Source: Malacoraja senta (lineage: Eukaryota). From it: a DNA stretch of 64,000 bases. The position numbers and the translations under genes were made by a program. The stretch lies in contig CM075978.1 in the NCBI GenBank assembly GCA_038087875.1, forward strand, positions 175,212,001-175,276,000, written 5' to 3'. Positions 25,796 to 56,471 of this stretch are shown here, piece by piece (the first letter of the stretch is position 1; each line of letters begins with the position of its first letter). The notes under the pieces were generated by a model. That model saw nothing but the letters and a program-made list of their open reading frames with translations, had not been told where the DNA came from and did no database searches.

Positions 25796-25816
25796 TGACG
25801 TCAAAGTGAAACGGAA
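25796..25816 (+). promoter_or_regulatory. Candidate proximal promoter module of gene A: CRE palindrome abutting an IRF element and an Ets core
   Basis: TGACGTCA 25796-25803 overlapping AAAGTGAAAC 25803-25812, then GGAA, about 110-125 nt upstream of the ATG. Confidence 0.5.
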
Positions 25817-25922
25817 CCATTCGGGCCACGCGGTATTGCTGCAAGACGGTCGCCAACAAGCTTCACTGCTTGACTTGCTGTCAGAGAGCAAACATCGTTG
25901 AATTTCATCATCTTGGCTCAGA

Positions 25923-25977
25923 ATGTTTATGTTTGCCGTGCTGCTGTGTCTCTCGATCCTGCGCATGAGTTACACAG
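25923..25977 (+). CDS. Gene A exon 1, signal peptide MFMFAVLLCLSILRMSYT
   Basis: Hydrophobic leader ending in phase 1 at AG/gttaat, 170 nt upstream of the V exon. Confidence 0.8.
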
Positions 25978-28900
25978 GTTAATATATTTCCCTCTATTAA
26001 ACGAAAATAACAGGGAAAAGGTCAATCCGCAAAAAGTATAAGATGTACAACTCTTACTTTTCGGTCGAGCTATTTCAGCTATTTGGATTTTTATCAATCC
26101 GTTCATTGTCATTTCACATGTTTAACGTTTGTTTTTAATTCTGACAGTTACTGACGGGGCCTCCTCGTTCAGGGTGCGTCAGATTCCCGATAAGGTAACG
26201 AAAGTGAAAGGTGAAAATGTATCCCTATACTGTGCTTTCCCAATCTTCGGTCAGAAAGCACTGGTGGATGTATACTGGAAGAGAGACGGTCAAGAAGAGA
26301 CTTTGAATCCCATCGCAAACAGGAGGATGATAATGAACAATGTCCTGAAGGGATCTGCCGAATTACATCTGTTGGACGTGAGCTTCCGTGACTCCGGGAT
26401 CTATTATTGCAGTGTGAGAGGCGGGGAAGGAAAGAGTTCCAAAAGCAATGGCACGAGGATTATTGTACACGGTGAGTCTTACTTGATGTTTCGAATCACA
26501 ATACAAAAACAAATACGGTGTGCTACAGAGTTATAAAGTAGCAATAAACGGGCCCTTTCTCAGTCTGTACTAGAGGTTTTGCTCTAGCGATTTAAGTAAT
26601 TGATTTTTCGTGATTGTTGGACCATGAGATCTTTGGACAATCATTATTCTTTAATTTCATATCATTTAGTTATCATTTCTATGTGTCGGGTTAATTTTCT
26701 TGGCGGCCCCTCAACTGCATCCTGCGAAAGGAGTATAGATTAAAATTGCAGATGGTAGTCAATGAAATATAAACCATCATATGTTAGCGAGTATTGTAGC
26801 TGCAGTCGTTTAGTCAAAAAAACATTGCGTTCGAGTCTAGACCTGTGATATCCAGATGATGGAGCATTCTTGGGGGTTCACGAATTGAGCTCTTTGTTGT
26901 AGAATAACCATACTTGACCATTTATGTAGTTATTTCTAGTCCAAATAGTAAATGTTAACAAAACGTATGTTGATAGAAGAAACATTTGATGAATAGTGAG
27001 CGTGATATATTCTAACCGCAATCTTGTGTAAGACTATTCTTCCGTGATTTTAGGAAATCATAGTTTCAAAGAAAATGAATGATAAAATACGAGTCACAAC
27101 ACATCTGCGACTACAGAAATTAGTTTCTGCCTAGAACGTTATAGCGGAAGTAACAAAAGTTCATGGTGAAATTGTTAAAGAAATTCAGAGGTATAGCAAG
27201 GGGTGGTGGCGTATTAGTGTGGGTGGAAGACAAAACAACCCCATTAAATTATAAACGGGGGAAAATCTGAGAATAATGCAACAAGTCACAAAATATGTAA
27301 ACAAAGAAGATAAAAGTAGTATCAGAATTCAAATGATTAAATTGCAAATTGAGAATATTAATCAAAACGTTATCCGTCATTTTACGTCGAGTTTCATTGG
27401 AACTCAGCAGAGCGTCGAGTGGGAGAACAGAAGCTTCAGTCTAAATGATAAATACACGTCAGTGGCATACTCGATTGCTAGGTGGAAATATGCCAGAAAG
27501 CTTCACCCAACTGAATACGCTCTTTCCTCCGCACAGCGCACTATTTCAATCCCACATCAGCAACTACTGAATACACACATAAACGCTACTATACCTTGTC
27601 CAGTTTAAGTACCGTGACATGTATTGCGAACACGCCAAATACCTAAAGCATCCCATCAATTTCGAAACTTATAACTGCTCAAAATAGAATTCAACAACTC
27701 CGAAACATAGAACAGGAATAGACCCTTCGGCCCACAATTTCAGTGCCGAATATGGTGCCAAGTTGAAATAATATCCGCTCTTTGCGAGACATATCCTTCC
27801 ATTCCCTGCCTTTGCCTATTTAAAAATATCTAAGATGCCCCTATCGTATCTGGCTCTGCAACTAGGCATGATGTAGTTAAGCTGGAAGGGGTTTAGAGCA
27901 GATTTACGAGGATGTTGCCACGACGCGAGGGTCTGAGCTATAGGGAGAGCCTGAGCAGGCTAGGACGTTATTCCTTGCAGCGCAGGAGGGAAGAGGATCT
28001 TATTAAGGCGTATCTGATCATGACAGGAATAAATCTGGTATATGCATCGCCTTTTACCCAGAGTAGTGGAATCAAGACCTTGTAAACTAAACATTTCACC
28101 ACATTAAATTACAATAACCGAGGAAAAGAAGTTTGCGTCGCAGTGGAGAGATCAATTATGTGCCCGCCACCAGGAAACCGAAATTGTCAGTCCCATGCAC
28201 CCTTTCTTTCTTTCCGATCACTACTTGTGAAATATCCGCGGAAATTCTCTGGTGAGAGCACTTGCATAGATCAGTTTGGGATGGAGATCAAAGATTTACC
28301 CACCGATGTAGAAAGAATGCTTTTGTTACGTGGACTGGAGCATGATGGTGCCGAACATTTGCCGTCAGAGATGGTGTCCTATTTCATGTTGAGTAAATGC
28401 AGTTGCTAAACATTTCATTCTATTAAATCACCCCCCCCCCCCCACACACACACACAACCCCTATGAAAACTCGGCATGGTGCGGCAGCGATAGAGTTGCT
28501 GCCTTACAGCGCTTGCAGCGTCGGAGACCCGCGTTCGATCCTGACTACGGCTGTTGTCTGTACGGAATTTGTACGTTCTACCCGTGAACGCGTGGGTTCC
28601 CTCCGAGATCTTCTGTTTCCTTCCACACCCCAACGACGTAGAGGTATGGTTGTAAATTGGCTTGGTAAATGTAAAAAATATCCCTAGTGTGTGTCGGATA
28701 GTGTTAATATGCGGCAATCGCTGGTCGGCGCGGACTCGATGGGCCGAAAGGCCTGGTTCCGCGTTGTATCTCTAAAACTAAAACACTAAAAAGCAACACA
28801 ATCACCACAGTACAGTGGGCGTGCTTGATACAGGGCGAATTAAGAAGGTTATGGTCAGGGTTAGCGATTAAGTAAATATATGACAGGTGCAAAATGATGT

Positions 28901-31900
28901 GGTTGAGTGAGGATATCCACGCACTGGAAGAAACAAATAGCGAGGTCGAGAAATAGAGAGAGTTGAAGGTGTTGAGGTTCAAATGGACCCGAGTATCCCT
29001 CTAGGTGAGTGATTGAATGTTTGCTTCAACATTTTCGTCTATTATGATTCACGTGAGTTACATATTTTTGCTGCAGACATGTGAGTGTTGGAATCTATCC
29101 CAAACAGTTAAGGGTGATTAATTGCCAATGTACAGGAACAGAACAATATCGCAGCAGCATAACGGGTCTGTAGCACAGTACTCAACAAACAAACCAAAAT
29201 GATTACAATAGAAAACTATATTAGTGCAAAACAAAAACAAATGCTCCAAAGTTCCGAGTACAACAAAGACGGTTTGTATTCGGTTTAGTTGGTGTTTGTA
29301 ATGTCTAATAGCCTGATGGTTGTTGGCAAAAAGCTCTTTCACAACATGAAGGTCATGGTTTTCAAACGCCTATACCTTCTTCTCGATGGCAGTGTGGCAA
29401 GGTTGTGTGGGGTCTTGAAGCTGGCTGCTTTTTTGAGGCAGCTTCTCCTATAGATCTCTTCCATGGTTGGAAGGTCGGAACACCTGATCGACCGGGCAGT
29501 GTCCACCACTTTTTGTAATTCCATTCCTGGGCGTTCGAGTTACTGGACCAGGCTGTGATGCAACCGGTTAATACGCTCTCTACCATATACTGCACAGGTT
29601 TAAGAGCGCTTTCGATTAAAGATGGTGTCAAGCAGGAAACTATGACTATGACTCAATGGCAACACACCGAATCTCCTCAATCTTCTTGAGAATTAGAAGC
29701 ATTGGGGGGCTTTCATATGATTGTATGGATGTGCGGACTTCAGGACGGATCTTCAGAAATATGCATGCCAGGGAACCTGAAGTTTTTGATTCTCTCCACC
29801 ACCGACCCGTCGATGAAGATAGGTTGATGAATCCTGGCCCTTCCTCCTCTAAAGTCAACAATCAGCAATTTTACTGCCATTGAGAGACAGATTGTTGTTC
29901 TAGCACCATTCGATCAGATGATGGAACTCCTCTGACACATCATTACCTGTAATTAGTTCAGCAACGGTGGGGTAGTCTGCAAATTTAAAGGTTGAGTTGG
30001 GACTGTTCCGGGTACACATCCATGGGTATAGAGTGAGCACACAGCCTTGAAGTGCCACTGTTCTGATAGTTATCGAGGATGAAGCGTGAGCAATGTGACA
30101 GCTTCACGGCATTGGTCAGTTCCAATATGGCCTTTTGTATACCTGCTGTTAGAAGATTATGGATTATCTCCAGTGATTTCTTCTTTCCTCTGTGTTATTT
30201 TCCCTTATAGGTGTAGCAAGCTGATGTCAAAAACCAATTGGATCTCAACCATTACATCACGCATGCTACTTCCCCCAAAATCTGTCCTGCTCGCCCTCTC
30301 TCATCCCATGCTTGCTGCGGTTAAGAAGTGATTCTAATGTTTCATTTGTCTGCATCCTCCTTGCATGTTGAGTTTGTGGGAACAAATTACAGTTTCCTTT
30401 GGGTGTCATTTTCCACAGGTTCCGTGGGAAGCCATTTCTCTGCTTCACCCGTTGAGTCATTAATGGCTACATATGGAGTAGTATTTTCATGCTATTATAT
30501 TATATCTGTACCACCTAATAACAATCCAATATTTGAGCCTCTGCACGGTGGCGCAGTGGTAGAGTTGCAGCCTACAGCGCTTACAGCGTCAGAGGCCCGC
30601 GTTCGATCCTACCTACAGGTGCTTGTCTGTACGGAGTTTGTACGTTCTGATAATAAGACGGCGCTTTGACTTCACCCCGTTATTACTTCATTGGAGGGAA
30701 GCAATCACGTTGGTTGGCGTGATAGCTATAATTATCCTCACCTTTTTACAAAAGCTTATGTGAGATGTAATGTATTAATTTATCAATTGTCCATCATTAG
30801 TCCACTTGGGTAGATAACCCTCCTCTAATCGATCTGAAAGATAATGATTTGCTTAATCAACCAATTTCTATACAAACTTATTCCTAGCTCAGAACTCTAC
30901 GTATTATTGTCTATTACCCTTGATCTATTCTTGATTATTGATTATTGGTCATAGTTTGGTATATTTTCCTAAATATATTTGGCATTGGGTTGACACGCTT
31001 TGCAAAAATAAACGCTATCATTGAATATAATCACAGAGTCCTCGAGCAGGAAAACACACATTTCAGCCCAATTGTCCAATGCTCACCAAGATGTCACACC
31101 GTAATTGGCCCTTATCCTTCTCTAAACCTTTTCCCCAATTTATCCGTCCAAATGTCTGGTAAAAATTGTACCTCCCTCAGCGACCTCATCTGGCACCTCA
31201 TTCCATATACCCACCAGCATCTGCATGAAGAGGATGCCCCTTAGGTTCTTGGTAAGTGTTCCCCTCTCGCCTCCCCCGGAATTGAGTCCGCAAAGTACAA
31301 CATTTCACCATTATCCTTTGCTTCCTTACATGGAGCCATTTATCTACCCAGTGGCGAGTTCTCCTTGGACTACATGGGATCTAATGTTCCAGAACAACGT
31401 ACCGTGTGGAACCTTGTCAAAGTCATTTCTGGTCCATACAGACAACGTCTGTCTACTGCTTTGCCCAAATCATCCTTTTTAGTTGCTTTAAATTCAATCG
31501 GATTCGTGTCACACGATATTTCACATATACAACCTTGCTGATAATCCTCGATCAGCTCCTTTCTAATCAAATGCATACATATATTATCCCTCTGAATCCT
31601 TTCCAGTGGCCTTCCTAACACAGACTGGTTTACAGTTCCCAAGGTTTTCCTTCCAGCCCTTCTCAAATATAGCCACAATATTAGCCATCCTCCAGTCTTC
31701 ATATAGGCCTTTTCATGCTATTCCTCTGTTGCTACACACTCTTAATTTGATGTTTTGTTTTCATCAATTCTTGGCGTCTCTAGATTTATACCATTATAAG
31801 ACACAACCGATGTGTTAACTCGCATCAGCACATTCTAAATTACCTGGTACAGGTGTGCGCAAATTTGCAGTTTGCAATATAGATACTGCGCACCGAAGGT

Positions 31901-34900
31901 CACCCATGGATGACACATAACCACATTTGTGGCTATCTATGTTCCCTTTTTACCTCTATTATGTACACTAAATATAAGGTGTCTTCGTCGTTTATCCTAT
32001 TAAAATTTATCAGACTACTTTTAAAAGTTCATCTTAAATACAACTCTCCAGAACATTTTCAAACTTGATCGAATCTTCCCACAGATTCCCAGCATTGTTT
32101 ATTGTTGCTCCTAAAACTACCTTTTTCACTCTAAACTTTATTTATTCTCCGGGTAATATTAGATACTACACCATATGTCAAACGTGCAAATTATTCTGCG
32201 CGTTGTCCCTCACAAGACTTTCACGCATACATAAAGCTGCTTCTCTCTTTCAGCATGTTTTACATATAATACAAAAATGACTCCCTTTACGATTTAATTA
32301 ACACCATTTTCCGTTTGATTGTACCACCTTGAATTCTGCTTTGTCTGGTGGAGCAACGTTGCGTTCCCAGCAGGTACCCAAAACCACCCTATCACCAACT
32401 AGAGAGAGGTCAAGTCCTACCATCTACCTTACTGGAGATTCTCAAACAATCTTCTTATCGGACTTTACGCGACTTTATCTTGAACTAAACGCACTCCGGT
32501 AATCCCGAATCTGTACAATGCGGACGGCTTAATTGTAATCATGTATAGTATTTTCGCTGATTGAATAACACACAACAAAAAGTTTGTCAATGTGGCTCGG
32601 TACACGTGATAATAAACTAAAACTGTTTAGCATAAAAAAAGAGAATCGCCCATGACAAGGAATTCCCAGAGGCAAGATAGCTTTATCAGAGATGACCGAA
32701 TGTTGTGTGCTCTATTTCACAGAGACTTGGCTCACCCCTCTTCCCCAGACTCAGCTGTCCATGCCGATAGTTTCTCCATTCGTCGCATGGACAGAATGAA
32801 GGCATTGGGGAAAGTGATAGGTGGTGACATCTGCCGCACATAGCGCTCAAATATAGTGGTTCTGTCCACCTGCGTTATAACGACGGTTTACTGTACTATA
32901 TATTTCCAACAACATAGATAAAATACTTTACTATTAAAGGAACGCACAAGAAGGTATGGTATTATCCATTTCGAAAGCGATTATATTTTCTTCTAAATAA
33001 ACATATAGGGGTACTAACTCCTTTGTCTTAAATTGTTTGCAGTGTCACCGACGCCTTTGAAGATTAAACAGATGAACATTCCTTCCCTGGCCCTAAACTG
33101 TACAACTGCTCCGTTTTTCCCGGAGGACTGTGAACTTACCTGGTATAAGGATGACCACAAAATCACTTCTGGAATAAGTACCACTAAAATACGGAACGGC
33201 GAGGGATTATACCTTGCTTCCAGCTTCCTGCATGTAGTGGATAGCCGATCGGTTTATAGTTGCAATGTGTCTCACGTCACCCTCCTGGTTCCGACCGTTG
33301 AAACTCACAGATTTCCTGGAATGGGTATGAGGTTTATATCTTCAATAACGTCCTGAGATATATCACTTTATTTATGTAAAGGCATTTCAGGAATTCCCAC
33401 CCAAAACTTACGCCAGACCGTTTTTAAGTATTTGAATGGAGATTGTGGGCAAGCCTTTGTTGTAATGGAAAGGTATGACAGTCTACGAAATTAGATACTT
33501 GTTAGTAAGAGATATCGCGCAAAGATGACAGTTGTGTTTGCATCTTTGTATAATAGCGGACGCTGGAACTCGCTGTTTATCTCCGATCATATAAAGCTCT
33601 ACAGCATGGAAGCAAGGCCCTTCGGCCCGCCCCGTCCACGTCAAGCAAATTGCCATTCTGGCCTAGACCCATCTCTCCGCATTTGACCATTTCCCCTCTA
33701 AATCTTTCTAATCCAAATATCTATGCAAAATTCCTTTGAAAATCACAATTGTATACGCTTCTGTAGCTTCCTCAGAAATAAATTGCCCCTTGTGCCCCTC
33801 TTAACCTTCCCTGTTGAGAATCCATTACCATGGAGAAAACGACTGTAAGCATTCGCTTTCTCTACGCCCATCATAATTTTATATACTTGAATTAGGTAAA
33901 CCTCCTATGCCTCCTATGCCTCATGGGAAGAGGTCACAACCTGCTCAGCTTCACCGGATAACTCCAGCCATGAATTCCAGGTAATACCTTGGTGAATCCT
34001 TTCTGCACCATTTCCAACATAATGATATGCTACGTATAGCAGGAAGACCAGGACTGCACACAGAACACCAACGAGTCGTCTCAGCAAATACTTATAAAGC
34101 TATTTCCCTGCATAATAAGGACATTGTTTAAATGTAAAATAATTTGCACTTATCGCTGTAAAGTTGGAGAGGGATGGTAATCCAACATGAAAACAAGTTG
34201 ACCAAACCAATAAACATGAGGACAGAGGCCAAGGGTAATTTAATAACATATGCGGTCATTAACTCAGATAATTTATTTTTTCATCGTTGCTGATCTGTGA
34301 TGGGATTCAAACAGAAGAGAAAAATGAAAATAAAGGAGAAATAAGAAAATTTGCGAACGGTCATACACACAATACGGAGTAGTGGTAATTCCGGATGATG
34401 AGCGTTCCTATGAACTGTCTGATCTGGTCTGTGCTCCCAGACATTTCTATGTTTTGTTAATTTTATGCGCGCAGCATAATTGATCTATAATTTATCCCAT
34501 TATTTTCATTCATAGAAACTGCCAGTTTTCATCCAATTTTCTGAAATTGGTGAAATCATTGTTCAGGTCTAAGGTTTTAGTCAATGCAGTTGGAAGAGAT
34601 TCCATAACGCTTTTTTGCGACTTCGTTGAGGTAGGACGAGAAGTAAAATAAAATGTAAGATGGATTACGATTTTAGGTACAATTGGAAATTGAGTTAACA
34701 TCTTCTAATTGACAGTTTTAGTTTCAGAGATACCGCGTGGCAACGGAGCCTTCAGCACACCGTCCACGCTGATCGTCGATCACCGGCATATAGTTCTCTG
34801 TTAGAACACTTTTTCATCCACTCCCTGGATACTGGCGACAACTTACAGAAGCCAATTAGCCTACACACTTGCACATCCATTCTATGTGAGATGTGCGAGG

Positions 34901-37900
34901 AGACCGTATCACCCGAAGAACACCAACGCAGTCACATTGAGAACGTACACATTCCACACGGACAGCATTCATGGTTAGGATCAAACCTGTGTCTCTCGCG
35001 CTGTGATACAGCAGGTCTACAGCTGCGCCACTGTGCTGCCGCAGCTCTCGTTTGCATTTGGTGTTTCCCAACTAAAATAGACCTCACCAAATATACTGTA
35101 GTAATTGCAATCTGAAAAGGTGAACTCTGGCGGGAGTACGCAGGTCCCTGGATGGTGTTAATGGAAGTTTTGAAAGGGCAAACATTATAATATCTATCGC
35201 TGAATGTGAAGTTACGGTGAGAAAGGAAATAGGTGTTCGCGGATACTGGAGAGTGAAGATGGTTTGTGGTAAAATAATGCCTTTGCGATAAAGAACGTAG
35301 AGAACAGCAGTCAGGCGGTCCCATGCTCGCTTAAAATCCAGAGCATGATTCCTTGAGATTAGAGGGTAGTAGCATAGAAGATGTTTACAAGAATGATCCC
35401 AGGAATCAGTAGGTTAAATTATGATGAACGTTTGTCGGCACTAGGCCTGTATTCGCTGGAGTTTAGAAAGAATGAGGCGGGACCTCATTGAAACATACAG
35501 AATAGCGAAAGGCTTGGATTGAGTGCATGAGGAGAAGATGTTTCCAATCGCGGGAGAGTTTAGGACTAGAGGTCATAGCCTCAGGATTAAATAATTAAAA
35601 GAAGGCCGTGGAGGCCGTCAGTGGATATGTTTTAGGCAGAGATAGATAGATTCTTGATTAGTACAGGTGTCAGAGGTTATGGGGAGAAGGCAGGGGTTAG
35701 GAGAGAGAGAAAGATCAGCCACGATGGAATGGCGGGTGGCCGAATGGCCCAATTCTACTCCTATCCCCTATAATCTATCCTGCAGTCTCGATTGCTGCCG
35801 CACAAATCCACACGTCTTTTAGATGTGGGAGAAACAGCAGCTCTACTAGATGTGTCGTTGTTGAGCACAAGGTGGTGATTTCCCTTCTCAAGGAACCCAA
35901 GGCCTGTTAAATCATCCTACTGAATGTTTCTCTGCCTCGGATTTGCTAAATGGCACTCATTGTTTTATTGGTCTGAGAGTTTCAGGTTACCAATTGAAAT
36001 AACGGGATTTTTTCGAACGCATTACTAATTGTGCAGCACTTAAAATTACTTAAGATTATTTACAGATTATCGGTGAATCTGTGGAATAATTTGCTACAGA
36101 AGGCCGTGGAGGCCGTCAGTGGATATTTTATAGGCCGAGATAGATAGATTCTTGATTAGTACAGGTGTCCGAGGGTATGGGGAGAATGCAGGAGAATGGG
36201 GTTAGGAGGTAGAGATAGTTCAGACATGATTGAATTGTGGAGTAGACGATTGACCGAATGGCTTAATTCTACTCCTATTGCTTGTGACCGTATGAGCTTA
36301 TGGACAAGGAGAAAGCTCTTCTTGTTCCAGGTGGGTGTTGGGACGAGATATCAGAGCAGCAGACTGATAAAAATTGAGCATGCACGACTGAGAACCAAAC
36401 TATGATGGAGGCAAACACGTTGAAGTAAAGGGTGCTTATAGAAACAGCGATACAACGTTTCAAGGTTTCAAGGTCAGTTTATTGTCACATGTACCAATTA
36501 AAGTCCAGTGAAATTTGCGATTATCAGAAAATGTCAAACAATCTCAGAAAATACATATAGGTAATGGATCCCGTTCACCTGGCTGAGTCGGAGGAAATGC
36601 GCTGGAAATAACGGTGCGAGTACGCGGGCTTGTAATTGGAATTAACGCAATAGCACAACCTCCTTGCTTTTACATGTTAGTCCTTTCTTGATAAATAATA
36701 AGATTCCCATTAGCTATGTACCGGCTTTAACTTTAGTTACCATTATGAAATTCTCTCGACGGGTACCCCCCATTGTATATTTTGTTCTTTTGTCTCATAA
36801 ACTCAATCGCTTAATCTTGGTTGTCTCTTCATCGTTTGGGTTTTCACAAGGTACAAATGTTAAATGTAAGTTTTCCACTTCCCCACTATTATGAATAATA
36901 AGCTCAATCGCAGCGACGGAGACTGTATACTTTTCTCCAGACCCAAAGCCAACGGTTCTAGTGTACATGTTTTGTGTAGTTAAAAGAAGAAAACAGGTGC
37001 TTGGGATCAGCTACCCTAATTGTACAAAACCTACTGTCGCCCCATTTCATTCCCTGCATAGTTCCATCAACTCCCCACAAAATGACCATCGCATTAATGT
37101 CGAGGATAGACACAAAATACTGGAGTAGCTGAACGGGACAGGCAGCGTCTTTGGAGAAAAAGAATGGGTGACGTTTCGGGTTGAAACCCTTCTTCAAACT
37201 TAAAGACTATGTATAGTGGCCAATTAACCAACAATCCTGCAAGTTGTTGAGATTTGGGAAAATGTTAGAGTACGCTACGGAAGTAACGTGATCACCGTGG
37301 GAATATAAAAACTCCAGAGAACACTGGAGGTCAGAATTGATCCAGGGTCTCTGCAGATGTGAAACAGCAGATTTACTAACTGCGAAGATGTGCCAGGAGT
37401 GGATCCAGAGTGTCACTTTCTCGGGCACATATGGTTCAAACTATTTTGAAAGCTGGGATAGTGCACGTTGAGATGGGAAATGTTTGAGATACTCAACAAT
37501 CAGACAGTATGAAGAGTAAAACAAAGCTCAATCTTTATAGGCTACTGATAGACATTTTTAAATTTTAGAATCCGTGTTAAGGATGAAATTTGATTGGAAT
37601 TTTGATTGGGCCGCTGAATAAAATAGAAGCGCAAGGCATTAACGGCAAGGGATTAGCACGGATTGAAGATTGGCTGACTGGCAGAGGGCAAATTGTGGCA
37701 ATAAAGGGGCCTTTTGTGGTTTGTTGCGGTTGAGTAGTGGTGTTCTGCAGGGGTCGGTGTTGTGTCTGCTGCATTTTACATTATATGTTAATGATCTGGA
37801 TGATTAAATTGATGGCCTTTTCGCCATTTTTCAGATGACACTAAGGTAGGTGCAGGGGCAGATAGTGCTGAGGAAGCAGGGAGTTTGCTGAAGGACTTGG

Positions 37901-39866
37901 GCAGTTTGGGAGAGTAGGTAAATAAGTGGCAGATGGAATACAGCGTAATAAAGTGAACATGTGGAACCCATTCTGTAATCCCTGGTTCGTGTACTCTGAT
38001 TATTTAATGAAGATAACCTCTGAAAAGTTATAATATTCAGCTTTTATTTTCTCTTTAGGAACACGCGTTAAACTCGTCTGCTTTCTGGCGGGTGGATTTG
38101 CCATATGCGTGTTAATTATTCCAGCGCTGGTATTTTATGCCAGGCGGTGCAAATTACACAGTACTGAAGGTAAGAAGTGACTTGATCCTTGTACGAAATT
38201 GGCAACACGGTGCTGGAGTAACTCTGCGGTTTGGCAGCATCTGAGGAGACAATGGATAGTGGACTTTGGGGGTTGAGTCATATGTGAAAAAGGGTCCCGA
38301 CCCGGAACTTCGGCTATCGATGCCCCCCGTAGATGCTGCCTAACCCGCTGAATTACTACAACACTTCGTGTTTTTTCCGAAAATAGCAATGTTCAGTTGA
38401 AGGAGCAACGAGGAGTGCTGAGATAACGATTTAAACCATCGGGCCTTTTCCCGGCCGCAGCATTCTGTGGGAAACAACATTTTAACCGGTTTAAGCCGTT
38501 GGTTGCAAAAGCATAGTTGTCGTTTGTTCTAAAAGAAGGCGCTTTTAAACACTAGGTGAAATGCTGCAAAGGTCGGGTTCTTTAAATAGGGGCAGTTCTC
38601 ACAGGAAAGCGGAAGCAAACCATAGGTTTTCAACTTTTCCGTGTGCTTTTCCTTAGCATTATGACTAACGAGGAGAGGATTTGTTCAAATAACAAGAATA
38701 GCATGACCGCAATGGTCAATTTCTGCAGCCGAACGAATCTGGCCACAACTCGATTTTTAACTGATTATCGGCAGGCAGGTTGTGACACGTTGATGATTAC
38801 ATTTGGTCGTTTTATTATGTTCTCTACTAGCCCCAGAAAACATTGAGGACAGAACTCACCACTTCGAAAAACAGGTAATTTTTTTGGTGGTATAACAAGA
38901 TATAACATATTGTATCATGTTCTGCTAATGGACGTCCGTGATTATAATCACATTGATGGGACAACAGGATGGATACACTTTTCGTGGAACTCTCTATGTG
39001 CCTCGTTTGCCATTTTCCTTATCCTCCCGAATTCTTATGATATAGTCCATGATCGTCAGCGGCTTGCACTTGCGTATCCTTCGAATTATCCTAAACAGTT
39101 TATGTCTAATCCGTCTGTGTCGCGCGGATTATTCACTTCGTGAAGCGTCATAACCGAGGCCCATCCTGTTCCAATTCAAAATTCACACGTCATATTTTTT
39201 GCGGAGTAGCTCGTACTGATATATGACGGAAAAACTGCTAACATGTCTGGGTCCAGAAATCGCGTCAACTCTATATTTTCCTCGAAGTCATCATCCAACA
39301 AACTTCCGGGCAGTGTTCTGCCCCATGCGTTTCACGATTTGGCTAATAGTTCACTAATTATTCAGGAAACTCAAACCAATTAGATACGAATTGCTTCCGT
39401 TTAATTTTATAGTAATCTCATCATAGGGAAGCAACCATATATAGCAATGGAATGACTGGTCGTGCAGACCCAGCTTCCTCCCGCTAATTTTATGTGTGCT
39501 CGTCTTCGCAGTTGTTTGTAAATGCGGAGTTTATTTCCTTTCAAATAAATGTTCCCTCAGTATCGGACGTACGCAGATTTGAACTTCAGCGGACAGAAGA
39601 AAACTACGAAAAACAGACGTCACGAAGAACAAACTACCTATGGCCAGGTAAGGTAAAAGCGGAAGTGTACTGCAAGGAAAATTCATGTACGTCGCCCATA
39701 TAGGGGAATCAGCAGCTCATAATCTCTGATTATTTTTCGATAGGTCAAAGAAGTGTCAGAAAATAAACTGACCTACGCAACTCTGGATCTCACCGCTTCT
39801 CTGAAACATCCAAGAACGGCGAAGAACAATGAAACAGAGTATGCAGGGATCATGATTTTTAAATAG
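25923..39866 (+). CDS. Gene A: SIRP-like IgSF inhibitory receptor, leader-V(J-type)-C1-TM-tail with 4 Tyr motifs, 341 aa; join(25923..25977,26148..26471,33043..33324,38059..38169,38831..38874,39561..39647,39744..39866)
   Basis: All six introns GT..AG, phases 1,1,1,1,0,0 compatible; summed length 1026 nt = 342 codons including stop; coherent domain order. Confidence 0.88.
26148..26471 (+). CDS. Gene A exon 2, Ig V-set domain with J-like G strand
   Basis: tttttaattctgacag acceptor, G/gtgagt donor; VSLYC, VYW, DSGIYYC, SNGTRIIVH. Confidence 0.95.
27870..28080 (+). mobile_element. Degenerate CR1 fragment in gene A intron 2
   Basis: ..agatttacgaggatgttgcca..gagggtctgagctatagggagag.. (RFTRMLP..EGLSYRE). 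Confidence 0.7.
28472..28790 (+). mobile_element. V-SINE (HE1-like), near full length
   Basis: tRNA head with B-box gttcgatcc, V core, tail ..gggccgaaaggcctggttccgcgttgtatctctaaaactaaaa. Confidence 0.88.
29270..30090 (-). mobile_element. Degenerate Rex1/Babar-type LINE 3' fragment
   Basis: Collinear, decayed similarity to 5906-6734 (ELQKVVDTA, SCLKKAAS, RRYRRLK). Confidence 0.75.
30545..30650 (+). mobile_element. V-SINE 5' fragment
   Basis: cacggtggcgcagtggtagagttgc..gttcgatcct..gtctgtacggagtttgtacgttct. Confidence 0.75.
31000..31800 (-). mobile_element. Degenerate CR1 fragments
   Basis: Decayed CR1 RT region (..FHTVR, DDLGKAVD) and CR1-type 3' end sequence. Confidence 0.55.
32390..32870 (+). 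mobile_element. Rex1/Babar-type fragments (3'UTR with aataaactaaaact tail, then an endonuclease fragment)
   Basis: 3'UTR shared with 41700-41930; PSSPDSAVHADSFSIRRMDR matches 8219-8911. Confidence 0.6.
33043..33324 (+). CDS. Gene A exon 3, Ig C1-set domain
   Basis: ttgtttgcag acceptor, G/gtatga donor; LNC..FFP, LTW, YSCNVSH (C1 YxCxVxH signature). Confidence 0.93.
33590..34090 (-). mobile_element. Degenerate CR1 3' fragment
   Basis: Reverse-complement CR1 3'UTR (ggcccttcggcc) and RT end. Confidence 0.6.
34850..35045 (-). mobile_element. V-SINE fragment
   Basis: Reverse complement of the SINE head (gcagcacagtggcgcagc..ggtttgatcct) and core. Confidence 0.7.
35360..36290 (+). mobile_element. 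Two CR1 3' fragments (about 35360-35780 and 36060-36290)
   Basis: GLYSLEFRR, FPIAGE.RTRGHSL, CR1 3'UTR ..gaatggc..aattctactcctat. Confidence 0.75.
37105..37200 (-). repeat. Penelope-type terminal repeat with near-intact hammerhead core
   Basis: Minus strand reads TTGAAGA-A-gggtttcaaccc-GAAA-CGTC-acccatt. Confidence 0.7.
37590..37960 (+). mobile_element. Degenerate CR1 RT fragment
   Basis: KIEAQGING..LARIEDWL.GR.Q.V.I.G, GVLQGSVL, F.DDTK. Confidence 0.7.
38059..38169 (+). CDS. Gene A exon 4, transmembrane exon (GTRVKLVCFLAGGFAICVLIIPALVFYARRCKLHSTE)
   Basis: cttttattttctctttag acceptor, G/gtaaga donor; uncharged hydrophobic stretch followed by RRCK. Confidence 0.9.
38190..38370. repeat. Degenerate head-to-head pair of Penelope-type terminal repeats
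   Basis: gctggagtaactc..gcagcatct / agatgctgcc..ctgaattac inverted arms around a decayed core (gtgaaaa-agggtcccgaccc-ggaac). Confidence 0.6.
38831..38874 (+). CDS. Gene A exon 5, 44-nt cytoplasmic linker (APENIEDRTHHFEKQ)
   Basis: ttctctactag acceptor, CAG/gtaatt donor; phase 1 to 0; same size and phases as gene B exon 61228-61271. Confidence 0.8.
39561..39647 (+). CDS. Gene A exon 6, cytoplasmic (YRTYADLNFSGQKKTTKNRRHEEQTTYGQ)
   Basis: ttccctcag acceptor, CAG/gtaagg donor; TYADLN ITIM-like motif and TTYGQ ITSM start. Confidence 0.85.
39744..39866 (+). CDS. Gene A exon 7, terminal (VKEVSENKLTYATLDLTASLKHPRTAKNNETEYAGIMIFK*)
   Basis: tatttttcgatag acceptor; ITIM LTYATL, ITSM TEYAGI, TAG stop. 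Confidence 0.88.
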   Translation, partial: VKEVSENKLTYATLDLTASLKHPRTAKNNETEYAGIMIFK

Positions 39867-40055
39867 CTGTGAAATCAGCAAGCGTCCATTCACTCTAAAG
39901 CCAACGATATTTAAATTACATAAACCTGATTAACATTGTGTCACAGATCGCTCAGATACATTATCATTTACAAGACAATGCGCAGTGAGCAGGGGATTTT
40001 AATGAGAGATGATCTACTCTGATGAATGTTACCCTTCTTAAGAGATGTTCAGCAC

Positions 40056-40061
40056 AATAAA
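40056..40061 (+). terminator. Candidate polyadenylation signal of gene A
   Basis: AATAAA about 190 nt after the stop codon. Confidence 0.45.
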
Positions 40062-40399
40062 TGCCTTTCACCGCAAATCCTAGCTAACCGCATCAGATCA
40101 TCTCTCTACTTTTTTCCTATCTAAGTGCCTGGGGAAATGCAAGTGAAAGGCTGTATTTTTGTCTGCCTCCACCAACTCCTTGCCAGCTCGTCCATGGTAG
40201 TAACCACATTCTGTGTACATAATTATCCCACGCTTTTCTACTCATCTCATCTTAAGCATTCGCTCGTCAGTTAAACATTTATCCACAATATTAAGATAAA
40301 GACCCTGAATATATAATCTGTCTGTACTCCTCATACTTAAAGAAAACTGAACAGATGCACCGTATAAAGCATTTTATCGGGATGTATCACAGCTGGTTT

Positions 40400-41930
40400 G
40401 GGAATTGCTCCATCCAAGACCGCAAGATATGGCAGAGAATTGTCGATCAGCCCAGACCGTCACGCAAACCATCTCCCTGCCAATAACTCAATCTACATTC
40501 CACGCTCCATCTTCTCCCCTCACCTACCAGGCAAGAGGTACAGAAGTATGAAAACCCATAGTCCAGATCCAGTGACAGTTTCTTCCCAGCTGTTATCGTT
40601 TCATTTGGATGAGAACATACAGGGCAAGATTGTTGATGATACTAAAGTGAGTGGTTTTGCAGATAGTAAAGATGGTTGTGAAATATTGCAGCAGGATCTG
40701 GATCGATTGGCCAGGTGGGCTGAGTAATGGTTGATGGAATACGAGAAGTGTGAGTTGTTGCATTTTGGGACGTCTAACAAGGGCAAGACCTACACAGTAA
40801 ATGATAGGCATCTGGGGAGTGTTGTAGAGCAGTTGGGTCTAAGTGCAGGTGCATGGTTCCTTGAAGGTCGAGTCGCAGGTAGTTAAGGAGGTCAAAAAGG
40901 CTTTTCGCACTTTGGCCTTCATCAGTCTGAGTATTGTGTATATAAGTTGAGAGGTGTGTAAGAAGGCGCTGCAGATGCTGGTTTAAACCGAAGATTGAAA
41001 CATAAAACTGGAGTAACTAAACGGGACAGGCAGTAACTCTGGAGAGAAGGAATGGGCGACGTTTCGGGTCGAGACCCTTCTACAAGTTGTGAGGACATGT
41101 TGCAGGTGAAAAATACGTAGGTGAGACCACATTTAGAATATTGTGTTCAGTTCTGGACACCATGTGATAGGAAATATATTGTCAAGCTTGAAACGGTTCA
41201 GAAAAGATTTACGAGGATGTTGCCAGGACTAGAGGGCGTGAGCTACAAGGAGAGATTGAGTAGGCTGGGTCTCTATTCCTTGGAATGCAGGAGGATGAGG
41301 GGTGATCTTATAGAGGTGTACAAAATCATGAGATAAATAAATCGGGTAGATGCACAGAGTCTCTTTCCCAGAGTCGGGGAATCGAGGACCACAGTACACA
41401 GGTTCAAGATGAAGGGGAAAAGATTTAATACGAATGTTTTGCACACAATGGATGGTGGGTGTATGGAACAAGCTGTCAGAGGAGGTAGTTGAGGCTGGGA
41501 CTATCCCATCGTTTAAGATACAGTTAGACATGCACATAGATAGGACAGGTTTGGAGGGATATGGACCAAGCGCAGGCAGGTGGTACTAGTGTAGCTGGGA
41601 CATGTTGGCCAGCGTGGACAAGTTGGGCCGAAGGGCCTGTTGCCACACTGTATTACTCTATGACTTTCTATGACTCTATGAGGCAACTAAACGATCCTAT
41701 CACCAACTAGCGAGCTGTCCTGTGCTATCGTCTACCTCATTGGTGACCTTCTGACTGTCTCTAATCGGACTTACTGGACTTGCACTAAACTTTACTTCGT
41801 TTATCCTGTATCTGTACACTGTGGGCGCTTGATTGTAATAATGTAAATCTTTTCGCTGATTGGATAGCATGCGACAGAAAATATTTTCACTGTACCTCGG
41901 TACAGGTGACAATAAACTAAATTAAAATAA
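40400..41930 (+). mobile_element. Patchwork of decayed Rex1/Babar and CR1 fragments with a Penelope-type repeat (40960-41080, minus)
   Basis: RPHLEYCVQFW..RFTRMLPGLEG..SYKERL at 41121-41336; Rex-type 3'UTR at 41700-41930. Confidence 0.7.
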
Positions 41931-46439: not shown

Positions 46440-48632
46440 TCAAGTTATACAGTATTGGCCAAGATTGACTGGCAATTAATTCTAAAAGGGTTGACGGTGG
46501 ATATGCAATGGAAGGCATTTAAAGACTGCATGGATGAACTACAAAAATTGTTCATCCCAGTTTGGCAAAAGAATAAATCAGGGAAGGTAGTGCATCCATG
46601 GATAATAAGGGAAATCAGGGATGGTATCAAAGCGAAGGATGATGCGTACAAATTAGCCAGAAAAAGCAGCATACTGGGAGAAATTCAGAGACCAGCAGAG
46701 GAGGACAAAGGGCTTAATTAGGAAAGGAAAAATAGATTATGAAAGAAAACTGGCAGGGAACATAAAAACTGACTGCAAAGGTTTTTATAGATATGTAAAA
46801 AGAAAGAGATTAGTTAAAACAAATATAGGTCCCTTGCAGTCAGAAACAGGTGAGTTGATCATGGGGAACAAGGATATGGCGGACCAATTGAATAACTACT
46901 TTGGTTCCTTCTTCACTAAGGAAGACATAAATAATCTGCCGGAAATAGTAGGGGACCGCGGGTCAAAGGAGTTGGAGGAATTGAGTGAAATCCAGGTTAG
47001 TCGGGAAGTGGTTTGGGGTAAATTGAATGGATTAAAGGCCGATAAATCCCCAGGGCCAGATAGGCTGCATCCCAGAGTACTTAAGGAAGTAGCTCCAGAA
47101 ATAGTGGATGCATTAGTAATAATCTTTCAAAACTCTTTAGATTCTGGAGTAGTTCCTGAGGATTGGCGGGTAGCAAACGTAACCCCACTTTTTAAGAAGG
47201 GAGGGAGAGAGAAAACGGGGAATTACAGACCAGTTAGTCTAACATCGGTAGTGGGGAAACTGCTAGAGTCAGTTATTAAAGATGGGATAGCAGCACATTT
47301 GGAAAGTGGTGAAATCATTGGACAAATTCAGCATGGATTTACGAAAGGTAAATCATGTCTGACGAATCTTATGGAATTTTTCGAGGATGTAACTAGTAGC
47401 GTGGATAGGGGAGAACCAGTGGATGTGGTGTATCTGGACTTCCAGAAGGCTTTCGACAAGGTCCCACATAAGAGATTAGTATACAAACTTAAAGCACATG
47501 GCATTGGGGGTTCAGTATTGATGTGGATAGAGAACTGGCTGGCAAACAGGAAGCAAAGAGTAGGAGTAAACGGGTCCTTTTCACAATGGCAGGCAGTGAC
47601 TAGAGGGGTACCGCAAGGCTCAGTGCTGGGACCCCAGCTATTTACAATATATATTAATGAACTGGATGAGGGAATTGAAGGCAATATCTCCAAGTTTGCG
47701 GATGACACTAAGCTGGGGGGCAGTGTTAGCTGTGAGGAGGATGCTAGGAGACTGCAAGGTGACTTGGATAGGCTGGGTGAGTGGGCAAATGTTTGGCAGA
47801 TGCAGTATAATGTGCATAAATGTGAGGTTATCCATTTTGGTGGCAAAAACAGGAAAGCAGACTAATATCTAAATGGTGGCCGACTAGGAAAAGGGGAGAT
47901 GCAGCGAGACCTGGGTGTCATGGTACACCAGTCATTGACAGTAGGCGTGAAGGTGCAGCAGGCAGTGAAGAAAGCGAATGGTATGTTAGCTTTCATAGCA
48001 AAAGGATTTGAGTATAGGAGCAGGGAGGTTCTACTGCAGTTGTACAGGGTCTTGGTGAGACCACACCTGGAGTATTGCGTACAGTTTTGGTCTCCAAATC
48101 TGAGGAAGGACATTATTGCCATAGAGGGAGTGCAGAGAAGGTTCACCAGACTGATTCCTAGGATGTCAGGACTGTCTTATGAAGAAAGACTGGATAGACT
48201 TGGTTTATACTCTCTAGAATTTAGGAGATTGAGAGGGAATCTTATAGAAACTTACAAAATTCTTAAGGGGTTGGACAGGCTAGATGCAGGAAGATTGCTC
48301 CCGATGTTGGGGAATTCCAGGACAAGGGGTCACAGCTTAAGGATAAGGGGGAAATCCTTTAAAACCGAGATGAGAAGAACTTTTTTCACACAGAGAGTGG
48401 TGAATCTCAGGAACTCTCTGCCACAGAGGGTAGTCGAGGCCAGTTCATTGGCTATATTTAAGAGGGAGTTAGATGTGGCCCTTGTGGCTAAAGGGATCAG
48501 AGGGTATGGAGAGAAGGCAGGTACGGGATACTGAGTTGGATGATCAGCCATGATCATATTGAATGGCGGTGCAGGCTTGAAGGGCCGAATGGCCTACTCC
48601 TGCACCTAATTTCTATGTTTCTATGTTTCTAT
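46440..48632 (+). mobile_element. Young 5'-truncated CR1 (subfamily with (TTTCTATG)n tail)
   Basis: RT 46834-47865 and 47899-48534 separated by a single TAA; very similar to 10891-11896. Confidence 0.94.
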
Positions 48633-51479: not shown

Positions 51480-54275
51480 ATAATCGAAGCAAAGACCGAG
51501 CGAAAGAGCCAATGTTGGCGGTTCTATCTACATGTTCTCGATTTCATTCTATTGGTTGTAGCTGGGGGGAGGAGGGGGGTAGGGGCTGACAAATTGGGAG
51601 TATAAGGGTGGAGTTAAAGGGGAAGAGAGTACAGGAAAGACGAATTAATGGGACGGAAAGTTCTAGAAGGGATAAGAGAGTAAGGTCATGTGAAATAGGA
51701 ACCGGCGTGAGAGGGGAGGTGAATAACGAATTGAAAGTGTTATATATGAATGTGCGAAATATAAGAAATAAAGTGGATGAGCTTGAGTTAGAAGTTGGTA
51801 AGTATGATATTGTGGGAATTGCAGAGACATCGCTGCAAGAGGGTCAGAGCTGGGAACCGAATATTCAGAGGTATACGTCCTATCGAAAAGACAGACAGGT
51901 GGGCAGATGGTGTGGGGTAGCACTGTTGGCACGGAATTATATTCAGTCCCTTGCAAGGGATGACATAGAATCAGAAGATGTAGAGTGAATAGAACTGAGA
52001 AATTGTCCCCCAAAAAACCCTAAGGGGAGTTATCCACAAGCCCCCAAACAGTAGCCTGGATATAGGGTGCAAGTTGCATCAGGAGTTAAAATTGGCATGT
52101 AACAAAGGTAATGCTACGTTGGTTATGGGAGATTTCAACATGCAGGTAGACTGAGAAAATCAGGTTGGTACTGGAACCCAAGAAATTGAGTTTGTAGAGT
52201 GCCCCTGAGATAGATTCTTAGAGCAGCTTGTACTGGAGCCTATCAGGGAGAAGGCAATACTGGATGTAGTGTTGTGTAATGAACCGGATTTGATAAGGGA
52301 ATTCAAGGTAAGGAACCATTAGGAGGTAGTGACCATAATATGATGTTTTAATCTGCAATGTGAGAGGGAGAATGTAAAATCGGAACTGTCAGTATTGTAG
52401 TTGAACAAAGGGGACTATGGAGGCATGAGGGAGGAGCTGGCCAAAGTTGACTGGAAAGGCAGCCGAGCAGGAATGACAGTGGTACACCAATGACAGCTAT
52501 TTCTGGGAACAATCCAGAAGCTGCAGGATCATTTCATTCCAATGAAGAAGAAAGATTCTAAGGGGAGTAAGAGGCGACCGTGGTTGACAAGGGAAGTCAA
52601 GGACAGTGTAAAAATAATAAGAAAAGGCGTATAACAGAGCAAAGATGAGCGGGAGACCAAAGGATTGGGAAACTTTTAAAGATCAACAGAAGGTAAATAA
52701 AAAGGCAATACAGGGAGAAAAGATAAGCACGAAGGTAAGCTCGCCAAGAATAGAAAGGAGGACAGTAAAACATATTTAGGTATGTGACGAGGAATAAAAT
52801 AGTTAAGACAAATATGGGTCCCTTGAAGACAGAAACAAGGGGAACAAGGGAATGGCAGACGAGTTGAACAGGTACTTTGGTTCTGTCTTCACTCAGGAAG
52901 CCACAAACAATCATCCCAGATGTACTAGGGGACAGAGGACCTTGGGTGATGGAGGAACTGAAGGACATTCACATCAGTCAGGCAATGGTGTTGGGTAGAC
53001 TGGTGGGATTGAAGGCTTATAAATCCCCAAGGCATGATGGTCTACATCTCAGGGTATTCAAGGAGGTGCCTCTAGAAATCGTGGATGCATTGGTGATCAT
53101 TTTCCAATGTTCCATAGATTCTGGATCAGTTTCTGTGGATTGGAGGGTAGCTAATGTTATCCCATTTTTTAAGAAAGGAGGGAGAGAAAATGCAGAGGAT
53201 TATAGACCAGTTAGCCTGACATCGATGGTGGGGAAGAGCACTGGAGTCGATTACTAAATATGTAATTGTGGTGCACTTGGATAGTAGTAACAGGATCGGT
53301 CCGAGTCAGCATGGATTTACGAGGGGGAAATCATGCTTGACTAATCTTCTGGAATTTTTTGACGATGTAACACGTAAAATGTTCAAGGGAGAAATATTAA
53401 TGATTTAGATGAAGGAATTAAAAGTAGCATTAGCAAATTTGCAGATGACACAAGTCTGGGTTGCAGTGTAAACTGTGAAGAGGATGCTATGAGGATTCAG
53501 GGTGACTTGGACAGGTTGGGTGAGTGGGCAGATGCATGGCAAATGCAGTATAATGTCGATAAATGCAAGGTTATCTACTGGTGGCAAGAAGAGGAAGGCA
53601 GATTATTATCTGAATGATGTCAGGTTAGGAAAAGGGGAGTACAACGAGACCTAGGTGTCCTTGTACATCAGTCACTGAAAGTAAGCATGCAGGTACAGCA
53701 GGCAGTGAAGAAAGCCAATGGCATGTTGGCCTTCATAACAATAGGAGTTGAGTATATGAGCAAAGAGGTCCTTCTGCAGTTGTACAGGGCCCTGATGAGA
53801 CCACACCTGGAGTAGTGTGTGCAGTTTTGGTCTCCTAATTTGAGGAAGGACATTCTTGCTGTTGAGGGAGTGCAGCTTAGGTTCATGAGGTTAATTCACA
53901 GGATGGCGCGACTGGAGCGGCTGGGCTTGTATTCACTGGAATTTAGAAGGATGAGAGAGGATCTTGTAGAAACATATAGAATTATTAAGGGATTTGACAC
54001 GCTAGATGCAGGAAACATTTTCCCGATGTTGGGGGAGTCCAGAACCAGGGACCACAGTTTAAGAATAAGGGGTAAGCTATCTAGAACTGAGATGAGGAAA
54101 AACCATTTCACCCAGAGGGCTGTGAATTTGTGGAATTGGAGGCAGTGGAGGCCGATTCATTGGATGCATTCAAAAGAGAGCGAGATAGAGCTCTTTGGAT
54201 CATCAGCCATGATCACATTGAATGGAGGTGCTGGCTCGGGGGACCGAATGGCCTACTACTGCACCTATTGTCCAT
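51480..54275 (+). mobile_element. Older CR1 covering the ORF2 start (APE) to the 3'UTR, with many stops and deletions
   Basis: LKVLYMNVRNIRNKVDELE at 51608-51988; RT pieces 52877-53257 and 53819-54295. Confidence 0.9.
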
Positions 54276-54279
54276 GTAA

Positions 54280-56364
54280 GGTTGAAAGGAAATAGTAAAA
54301 ATTGGAAAGAGCCATGGTTATCAAGGGAAATTGGACACTTGGTTCGGAAAAAGAGAGACATCTACAATAATTATAGGCAGCATGGAGTAAATGAGGTGCT
54401 TGAGGAGTATCAAGAATGTAAAAAGAATATTAAGAAAGAAATTAGAAAAGCTAAAAGAAGATATGAGGTTGCTTTGGCAAGTAAAGTGAAAGTAAATCCA
54501 AAGGGTTTCTACAGCTATATTAATAGCAAAACGATAACAAGAAATAAAATTGGTCCATTAGAGAGTCAGAGTGGACAGCTATCTGCAGAGCCAAAAGAGA
54601 TGGGGGAGATATTGAACAATTTCTTTTCTTCGGTATTCACCAAGGAGAAGGATATGGAATTATGTGAGGTAAGCGAAACGAGCAGAGTAGCAATGGAAAC
54701 TGTGAGATTCAAAGAAGAGGAGGTGCGGACACTTTTGAAATATATGAAAACGGATAAGTCAGGTCCTGACAGGATATTCCCTAGGACATTGAGGGAAGTT
54801 AGTGTAGAAATAGCAGGGGCTATGACAGAAATATTTCAAATGTCATTAGAAACGGGAATAGTGCCGGAGGATTGGCGTACTGCGCATGTTGTTCCGTTGT
54901 TTAAAAAGGGTTATAAGAGTAAACCTAGCAATTATAGACCTGTTAGTTTGACGTCAGTGGTGGGCAAATTAATGGAAAGGATACGTAAAGATAATGTATA
55001 TAAGCATCTGGATAAGCAGGTTCTGATTAGGAACAGTCAACATGGATTTGTGCCTGGAAGGTCATGCTTGACTAATCTTCTTGAATTTTTCGAAGAGGTT
55101 ACTAGGGAAATTGATGAGGGTAAAGCAGTGGATGTTGTCTATCTGGACTTTAGTAAGGCCTCTGACAAGGTTCCTCATGGAAGGTTGGTTAAGAAGGTTC
55201 AATTGTTGGGTATTAATGGTGGAGTAGCAAGATGGATTCAACAGTGGCTGAATGGGAGATGCCAGAGAGTAATGGTGGATGGCTGTTTGTCAGGTTGGAG
55301 GCCGGTGACCAGTGGGGTGCCTCAGGGGTCGGTGTTGGGTCCATTGTTGTTTGTCATGTACATCAATGATCTGGATGATGGTGTGGAAAATTGGATTAGT
55401 AAGTATGCAGATGATACTAAGATAGGTGGTGTTGTCGATAATGAAGAAGATTTTCAAAGTCTACAGAGAGATTTAGGCCATTTGGAAGAGTGGGCTGAAA
55501 GATGGCAGATGGAGTTTAATGCTGACAAATGTGAGGTGCTACATCTCGGCAGGACAAATCAAAATAGGACGTACATGGTAAGTGGTAGCGAATTGAGGAA
55601 TGCAGTTGAACAGAGGGATCTAGGAATAACTGTGCATAGTTTCCTGAAGGTGGAATCTCATGTAGATAGGGTGGTAAAGAAAGCTTTTGGTGTGCTGGCC
55701 TTTATAAATCAGAGCATTGAATATAGAAGTTGGGATGTAATGTTAAAATTGTACAAGGCATTGGTGAGGCCAATTCTGGAGTATGGAGTACAATTTTGGT
55801 CGGCTAATTATAGGAAGGATGTCAACAAAATAGAGAGAGTACAGAGGAGATTTACTAGAATGTTGCCTGGGTTTCAGCAACTAAGTTACAGAGAAAGGTT
55901 GAACAAGTTAGGTCTTTATTCTTTGGAGTGCAGAAGGTTAAGAGGGGACTTGATAGAGGTCTTTAAAATTATGAGCGGGTTAGACAGAGTGGACGTGGAT
56001 AAGCTTTTCCCATTGAGAGTAGGGAAGATTCAAACAAGGGGACATGACTTGAGAATTAAGGGACAGAAGTTTAGGGGTAACATTAGTGGGAACTTCTTTA
56101 CTCAGAGAGTGGAAGCTGTGTGGAATGAGCTTCCAGTGGAAGTGGTGGAGGCAGGTTCGATGTTATCCTTTAAAAATAGATTGGATGGGTATATGGACGG
56201 GAAAGGAATGGAGGGTTATGGTGTGAGTGCAGGTAGATGGGACTAGGGAAGTAAAATTAAAAAAATTAAAATTAAAAAAATTAAAAGTGTTCGGCACTGA
56301 CTTGAAGGGCCGAGATGGCCTGTTTCCGTGCTGTTATGGTTATATGGGTATATGGTTATATGGT
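54280..56364 (+). mobile_element. Young 5'-truncated CR1 with an uninterrupted RT-containing frame to its natural stop
   Basis: ORF 54222-56246 (674 aa; first residues come from the flanking element); YRPVSLTS, QHGF, PQGSVLGP, KYADD; (GTTATATG)n tail. Confidence 0.95.
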
Positions 56365-56471
56365 ATCTATTCATGTATGTAACGACAGACTACCTTACAT
56401 AGATAATTGGTTAACATGTATTCATCTTTGATTCGTGAGTTATTCCATTAATTGGCTCTTGTTACACTTAC

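Follow-up and report, generated by a model that had tools for sequence, protein, structure and literature searches.

We describe a receptor gene in a 64,000-nucleotide (nt) stretch of the genome of Malacoraja senta (assembly GCA_038087875.1, contig CM075978.1, positions 175,212,001 to 175,276,000, forward strand). We refer to the whole stretch as the window, and all coordinates count from its first letter. Judged from its sequence, the interval 25923-39866 is an intact single gene with junctions supported by homology, and the locus is a member of a family of V-C1 receptors found only in cartilaginous fish. We consider it probable that this intact seven-exon gene encodes a type I membrane protein, a non-rearranging receptor with one V and one C1 domain, that acts as an inhibitory receptor via SHP-1 and SHP-2.

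The gene consists of the following features, with exon-intron boundaries marked by a slash:

Exon 1, 25923-25977, + strand: start codon and split leader (MFMFAVLLCLSILRMSYT plus 1 nt), ending in phase 1 at donor CAG/gttaat; read directly.
Exon 2, 26148-26471, + strand: V(J) domain whose J-like G strand (..SNGTRIIVH) is encoded here as well, canonical Cys47, Trp and Cys106, donor ACG/gtgagt.
Exon 3, 33043-33324, + strand: lone C1-set domain (Cys146..Trp..Cys200-x-V-x-H), phase 1 to phase 1, donor TGG/gtatga.
Exon 4, 38059-38169, + strand: short stalk, uncharged transmembrane helix VKLVCFLAGGFAICVLIIPALVFYA and stop-transfer sequence RRCK, donor AAG/gtaaga; located by hydropathy scan.
Exon 5, 38831-38874, + strand: 44-nt acidic exon APENIEDRTHHFEKQ, phase 1 to phase 0, donor CAG/gtaatt.
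Exon 6, 39561-39647, + strand: first tyrosine cassette (Y276 in RTYADL; Y299 in TTYGQ/V), donor CAG/gtaagg.
Exon 7, 39744-39866, + strand: second tyrosine cassette (Y312 in LTYATL; Y334 in TEYAGI) and stop codon TAG; located by motif scan and read directly.
Likely polyadenylation signal, 40056-40061, + strand: first AATAAA, 190 nt past the stop codon; pattern scan only.

Spliced together, the seven exons give 1026 nt, or 341 codons and a stop, in frame, and this coding sequence contains no internal stop or frameshift. An earlier sequence-only reading of the same DNA had proposed this model, and its coordinates, exon count and length were all correct. Every intron begins with GT, each acceptor AG is preceded by a pyrimidine-rich tract, and the exon-end phases along the gene run 1, 1, 1, 1, 0, 0, with exon 4 (phase 1) compatible with the end of the C1 exon. 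Exon 5 was too short for homology searches, which are too coarse for it; it is the top AG..GT candidate in the correct phase within the scanned interval (38.2-39.6 kb), and its end, E-K-Q/gt, resembles the exon end ..EEQ/gt of the elephant shark, Callorhinchus milii. The encoded protein begins with a split leader and a V(J) domain that is already joined in the germline; a single C1 domain, a transmembrane segment with zero charged residues and a 96-residue tail follow. Pfam recognizes both ectodomains in the 341-amino-acid protein (V-set 1.8e-10; C1-set 2.3e-12) and every exon is collinear with proteins predicted by RefSeq in sharks, rays and a chimaera, which bears out the proposal that this is a complete V-C1 receptor.

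How far do related genes share this plan? Searched against 1.84 billion representative proteins, the V exon retrieved single-V proteins at 47-56% identity, in which leader, V, C1, transmembrane segment, acidic stretch and tyrosine cassettes follow in that order. When family proteins were compared with the window by tblastn, the V exon matched at 4e-35, the C1 exon at 1e-28, and the transmembrane and last tail exons at about 7e-4. These matches, together with the retention of all family-invariant residues in both domains, are far beyond chance. Identity to family members is 53-57% in V and 52-54% in C1, and exon 7 is 51% identical to Mobula tails. Relatives with the same architecture include a Heterodontus francisci protein (P0010, 342 amino acids, named 'tapasin-related protein-like isoform X2') and two Mobula proteins of 361 amino acids (P0008, which is XP_072135199.1 of Mobula birostris and is named 'SIRP-alpha-like', and P0160).

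The closest view of the shared exon plan comes from the C. milii gene P0169, also labelled SIRP-alpha-like, which spans 6.7 kb and matches the skate gene in exon number, order and phases. Its leader, V, C1 and transmembrane exons are in phase 1; the leader exon has the identical layout of 18 codons plus 1 nt. A 14-codon acidic exon follows, and then 37-codon cassette exons that end ..VYAQ/gt in phase 0, where the skate gene has ..TYGQ/gt. Similarly, the leader end ..SYT/V of the skate gene corresponds to ..TYT/V in the Mobula homologues. The tail cassette pattern SYAxL..TVYAQ..LTYAxL..EYAEI is kept across the family, so that these unnamed chondrichthyan genes and the one described here share domain order, exon plan, phases and tail cassette. 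The two 37-codon cassette exons of P0169 are evident duplicates of each other.

A profile of the family retrieved 56 proteins at E<=1e-44, all of them from sharks, rays or the elephant shark, and the next match was an uncharacterised Anolis V-C-transmembrane protein at 6.7e-5. Repeating the search at a looser threshold added one Anolis protein only and retrieved no bony-vertebrate orthologue, with the proviso that this protein search requires shared five-residue words and that distant relatives may escape it. A maximum-likelihood tree built from the 56 members joins the window protein with two Mobula proteins as its sisters (support value SH-aLRT 100; 49% identity over the full length) within a 16-member clade (SH-aLRT 100), a placement that points to a batoid host. 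The tree contains at least six deep clades; several mix sharks and rays, and others contain chimaera sequences. The nearest relatives of the V domain outside cartilaginous fish are turtle and newt proteins (P0074, P0077 and P0112; E about 1e-9 to 1e-11), which carry two tandem VJ-type V domains and a transmembrane segment without a C1 domain; P0074 also has an ITIM-like VQYAEI.

The suggestion that the gene belongs to a poorly described multigene family held up well, both in the 56 profile members and in their contradictory RefSeq names. SIRP-alpha-like is the commonest of these; others are tapasin-related-like, NCR3LG1-like, CD276, Ig lambda-like, MHC class I/II-like and butyrophilin-like. 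We found no paper describing the family, with any overlap with the published nurse-shark 'NCR3 family' (Kinlein et al. 2021) left unchecked, and the Protein Atlas returned generic V-set clusters only.

The tail suggests what the receptor does. All four motifs that had been read there are present at the positions given: RTYADL at 39564, TTYGQV at 39633, straddling the exon 6/7 junction, LTYATL at 39768 and TEYAGI at 39834. LTYATL is a canonical immunoreceptor tyrosine-based inhibitory motif (ITIM), TTYGQV and TEYAGI are canonical immunoreceptor tyrosine-based switch motifs (ITSMs), and RTYADL is an ITIM-like YxxL motif. An uncharged transmembrane segment combined with two cassettes of ITIM or YxxL plus ITSM predicts an inhibitory receptor, most likely one that recruits SHP-1 or SHP-2. 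Among the family members whose tails were classified, 25 have at least two tyrosine motifs and 14 are short-tailed with none, and the tree calls for at least 11 changes between the two tail types. This is the pattern expected of paired inhibitory and activating receptors.

We observed how the gene is built, which domains and motifs it encodes and to which family it belongs; its expression and the following chain of events are inferred. The V domain would bind a ligand on a cell surface, and Src-family kinases would then phosphorylate both cassettes, in each of which the YxxL or ITIM tyrosine is followed by the ITSM tyrosine 23 (Y276/Y299) or 22 (Y312/Y334) residues on. Once both of its tyrosines are phosphorylated, a cassette would offer a docking site for the tandem SH2 domains of SHP-1 or SHP-2, so that each cassette would hold one phosphatase. 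The phosphatase would in turn damp signals from activating receptors, among them perhaps short-tailed relatives whose genes lie close by, and adaptors that bind ITSMs are a possible modifier.

Several observations weigh against this reading. The copy described here departs from other family members in three ways: the J-like bulge reads S-N-G rather than the G-x-G of most relatives; the first tail motif has Arg at -2 and is for this reason not a canonical ITIM; and exon 6, the first cassette exon, lacks about eight codons at the 5' end when compared with the cassette exons of C. milii, which have 37. Exon 5 has weaker alternative donors. SHP-1/2 binding follows from motif rules established in mammals, and some of the short-tailed members may be incomplete gene models or isoforms. 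A search for the tail exons among RNA-Seq libraries matched no run, and transcript support was not found. The four runs compared at the locus are genomic DNA; in those retrieved with the V exon, coverage is low, introns are evenly covered and exon-exon joints are absent.

Could the exons belong to something other than one expressed gene? The transmembrane and tail exons might come from another transcript, or the locus might be a silent, recent pseudogene in a cluster with fast turnover; the lack of RNA evidence among the runs searched and introns of 4.7-6.6 kb filled with repeats speak for this view. However, the phases fit throughout the gene, and in tblastn with family proteins the + strand of the 64-kb window showed no further V or C1 exon to which the tail could belong. 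The same exon order and phases recur in the compact elephant-shark gene, the reading frame is open from start to stop with its invariant residues kept, and of the exon 5 differences listed for a related species, three are synonymous and one is non-synonymous. We therefore regard this explanation as very improbable, the least probable of those that we weighed.

A different question is which known receptors the gene is related to. SIRP-alpha has a V-C1-C1 ectodomain, and its tail motifs ITYADL, TEYASI, LTYADL and SEYASV recruit SHP-1/2. The skate protein resembles it in several respects: a C1-set domain comes after a V(J) domain that does not rearrange, the transmembrane segment is uncharged, the tail has four tyrosines in two ITIM-type pairs of the kind that recruit SHP-1/2 in SIRP-alpha, and there are paired activating relatives. 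The SIRP-type motif pattern is present at Y276, Y299, Y312 and Y334, with YADL-type and EYA[GS]I-type (EYAxI) motifs alternating at a spacing similar to that of the SIRP-alpha tail. 'Tyrosine-protein phosphatase non-receptor type substrate 1-like' is the most frequent RefSeq name among the relatives, and the family profile matches the SIRP-alpha ectodomain in the PDB (2wng, 1.2e-28, over V and the first C1) and SIRP-gamma (1.6e-24). The family could thus be a true orthologue or co-orthologue of SIRP-alpha, with a second C1 domain gained in tetrapods or lost here, and with a CD47-like ligand. Other evidence speaks against this. SIRP-alpha has two C1 domains, whereas the skate gene has a lone C1 exon. 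Antibody heavy and light chains score equal to or above SIRP with the same profile, as does UrIg2 (1.9e-32). Among the best 60 matches of the PDB profile searches with V, C1 and the whole protein, multi-domain chains and antibodies dominate, and the ranks of SIRP and NCR3 are not readable there. When the domains are compared singly, the likeness fades. With the AlphaFold2 models (mean confidence, pLDDT, 87.5 for V and 91.1 for C1), Foldseek listed no SIRP for V in its 30 best Swiss-Prot and 50 best PDB matches, despite the many SIRP V structures available, and none in the 30 best Swiss-Prot matches of the C1 model, to which major histocompatibility complex (MHC) class II beta2 domains are structurally nearest. 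By sequence, C1 is nearest to Ig CH domains and UrIg2, the latter being its second-best PDB match (8.4e-11; profile 1.3e-29); it is a C1-set domain of the generic kind. Neither V nor C1 is specifically SIRP-like, and the family-profile search, which depends on shared five-residue words, retrieved nothing from bony vertebrates in the E range from 1e-44 to 6.7e-5 and no orthologue outside cartilaginous fish. Finally, ITIM-ITSM pairs occur in many inhibitory receptors of the immunoglobulin superfamily, including unrelated ones, so the tail likeness to SIRP-alpha speaks for a mechanism and only weakly for descent. Orthology with SIRP-alpha is improbable in our view. The sequence-only reading had left the choice between a SIRP-like and an independently assembled receptor; SIRP membership is not supported, and independent assembly fits best.

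NKp30, the product of NCR3, is another candidate for kinship in the V domain. By a small margin it is the nearest single V-domain match by structure and by sequence, and it too has its V(J) in one exon. Among the top 30 Swiss-Prot matches of the V model it comes first (E 2.5e-9, 24-28% identity, residues 2-107), ahead of CD79b, CD8beta, VSTM4, TMIGD2 and T-cell receptor (TCR) V domains; among the top 50 PDB matches it ranks second to third in a leading group with CD79b and IgNAR V. Human NCR3 is aligned by phmmer over residues 13-106, and the V-only isoform of one sawfish family gene carries the RefSeq name NCR3-like. These results would fit a family that is an old NKp30 paralogue with the primordial V-C1 layout, derived from a VJ-C1 ancestor in common with the MHC-linked NCR3 genes, NKp30 having later lost its C1 domain. 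However, NKp30 is only narrowly ahead of CD79b, CD8beta, IgNAR V and TCR V (E 2.5e-9 versus 5e-8). Mammalian NKp30 lacks a C1 domain, has an Arg in its transmembrane segment and signals through CD3zeta or FcRgamma, whereas the skate protein has a C1 domain, an uncharged transmembrane segment and a long tail rich in tyrosine motifs. The genomic positions seem to differ as well. In the sawfish, DDAH2 and AIF1, in the MHC class III region, flank the genes annotated as NCR3 (PMC10751288 supplement). LOC119970986, a family gene of the catshark, maps to a contig of 198.8 Mb and is missing from the gene list of the catshark MHC chromosome 13 (PMC10751288; entries 41,614-163,380,576 bp). The apparently different location and the differences in C1, transmembrane segment and tail indicate no closer tie to NCR3 than that of an old paralogue, and we hold even that relationship to be rather unlikely. 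Our preferred reading remains that of an intact, non-rearranging inhibitory V-C1 receptor.

The V exon places the gene in a wider group. UrIg2 has a split leader and a single VJ exon, with nine C1-type domains in the nurse shark (PMC12227049), and PRARP is the name given to non-rearranging V-C1 genes of bony vertebrates by Fu et al. (2019, J Immunol), as that work is cited in PMC10751288. Both PRARP and UrIg/UrIg2 resemble the skate gene in having a germline-joined VJ exon, a split leader, one or more C1-type domains and no recombination signal sequence (RSS). In the interval 25000-41000 we found no RSS heptamer/nonamer pair, and the V exon ends at a splice donor. The split leader, single VJ exon and absence of an RSS put the gene among the non-rearranging VJ-C1 genes, which have been discussed as relics of antigen-receptor precursors (PMC10751288, PMC11599192). 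Two other assignments were rejected. A rearranging V gene of the Ig or TCR type does not fit, given the lack of an RSS and the J-like strand inside a V exon that ends at a donor. Membership in UrIg/UrIg2 does not fit their architecture of several C domains, for which no ITIM tail has been described, in contrast to the one C1 domain and tyrosine tail found here.

The family is clustered in the genome. The family members of each species lie on one chromosome-sized contig, and at 15.22-15.61 Mb of the C. milii scaffold MU249845.1 at least nine family genes follow one another in one orientation over at least 390 kb, with only family genes seen in the interval. The window itself contains part of a second family gene on the - strand, tail to tail with the first. 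Its transmembrane exon lies at 61935-62000 (IFGCIGAGLIPLIIIIFIVKRK), and its tail exon, at 56451-56684, ends in ..KLTYTTLNIAGLKASTKCRYVEESTVYAQVSVTRAN and a stop codon and encodes a single ITIM+ITSM cassette. Only these two exons were seen, so its V and C1 exons must lie past the end of the window.

Besides receptor exons, the window holds fragments of long interspersed nuclear elements (LINEs). The earlier description of exons scattered through repeats was apt: LINE open reading frames (ORFs) flank the gene. In genomic runs from three related species, word depths rise to 1e4-1e6 over the intron stretches 35200-36600, 37000-37200 and 38200-38400, which marks these stretches as very high-copy interspersed repeats common to those species. 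A nearly full-length L1-like LINE occupies 17953-23583 (+), with an ORF1 (weak match to an L1 RNA-binding domain) followed by endonuclease, reverse-transcriptase and zf-RVT ORFs. Other long retroelement ORFs lie at 54222-56246 (+), 46834-47865 (+), 9411-10388 (-) and 517-1992 (+); one of them, an uninterrupted reverse-transcriptase ORF of 674 amino acids, lies between the two receptor genes. Just 5' of exon 1, an ORF of 160 amino acids (24739-25221, +) has no Pfam match, and its context suggests a transposon remnant.

Variation at the locus was examined in genomic runs. Two runs of the same species (X1 and X2) contain contigs identical to the window, with the exons unchanged. Run X1 also contains a second version of the C1 exon with five differences, three of them non-synonymous, and in the C1 exon of a related species 11 codons differ, eight non-synonymously. 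These C1 variants reflect either fast protein evolution or a close paralogue.

Why does one skate receptor gene matter? UrIg, UrIg2, PRARP, NKp30 and SIRP are the main comparative material on the target of the RAG transposon at the origin of antigen receptors. The chimaera, sharks and rays carry, in addition, a large clustered family with inhibitory and short-tailed forms under contradictory public names. Existing gene sets already predict this family, and the single copy matters less than the family as a whole. What is new here is one intact, fully resolved inhibitory member and a conserved exon plan, with one exon for each ITIM+ITSM cassette, that can be used to annotate the family properly. 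We raise as a speculative possibility, itself rather doubtful, that the family is a surviving V-C1 branch of the non-rearranging 'VJ-C1' stock that also yielded NKp30, and perhaps SIRP and PRARP, and that this stock had divided into inhibitory and activating pairs before chimaeras split from sharks and rays. If this were true, ectodomains like those of antigen receptors would have been joined, outside the MHC, to paired-receptor signalling with a two-cassette SHP-docking tail when jawed vertebrates began.

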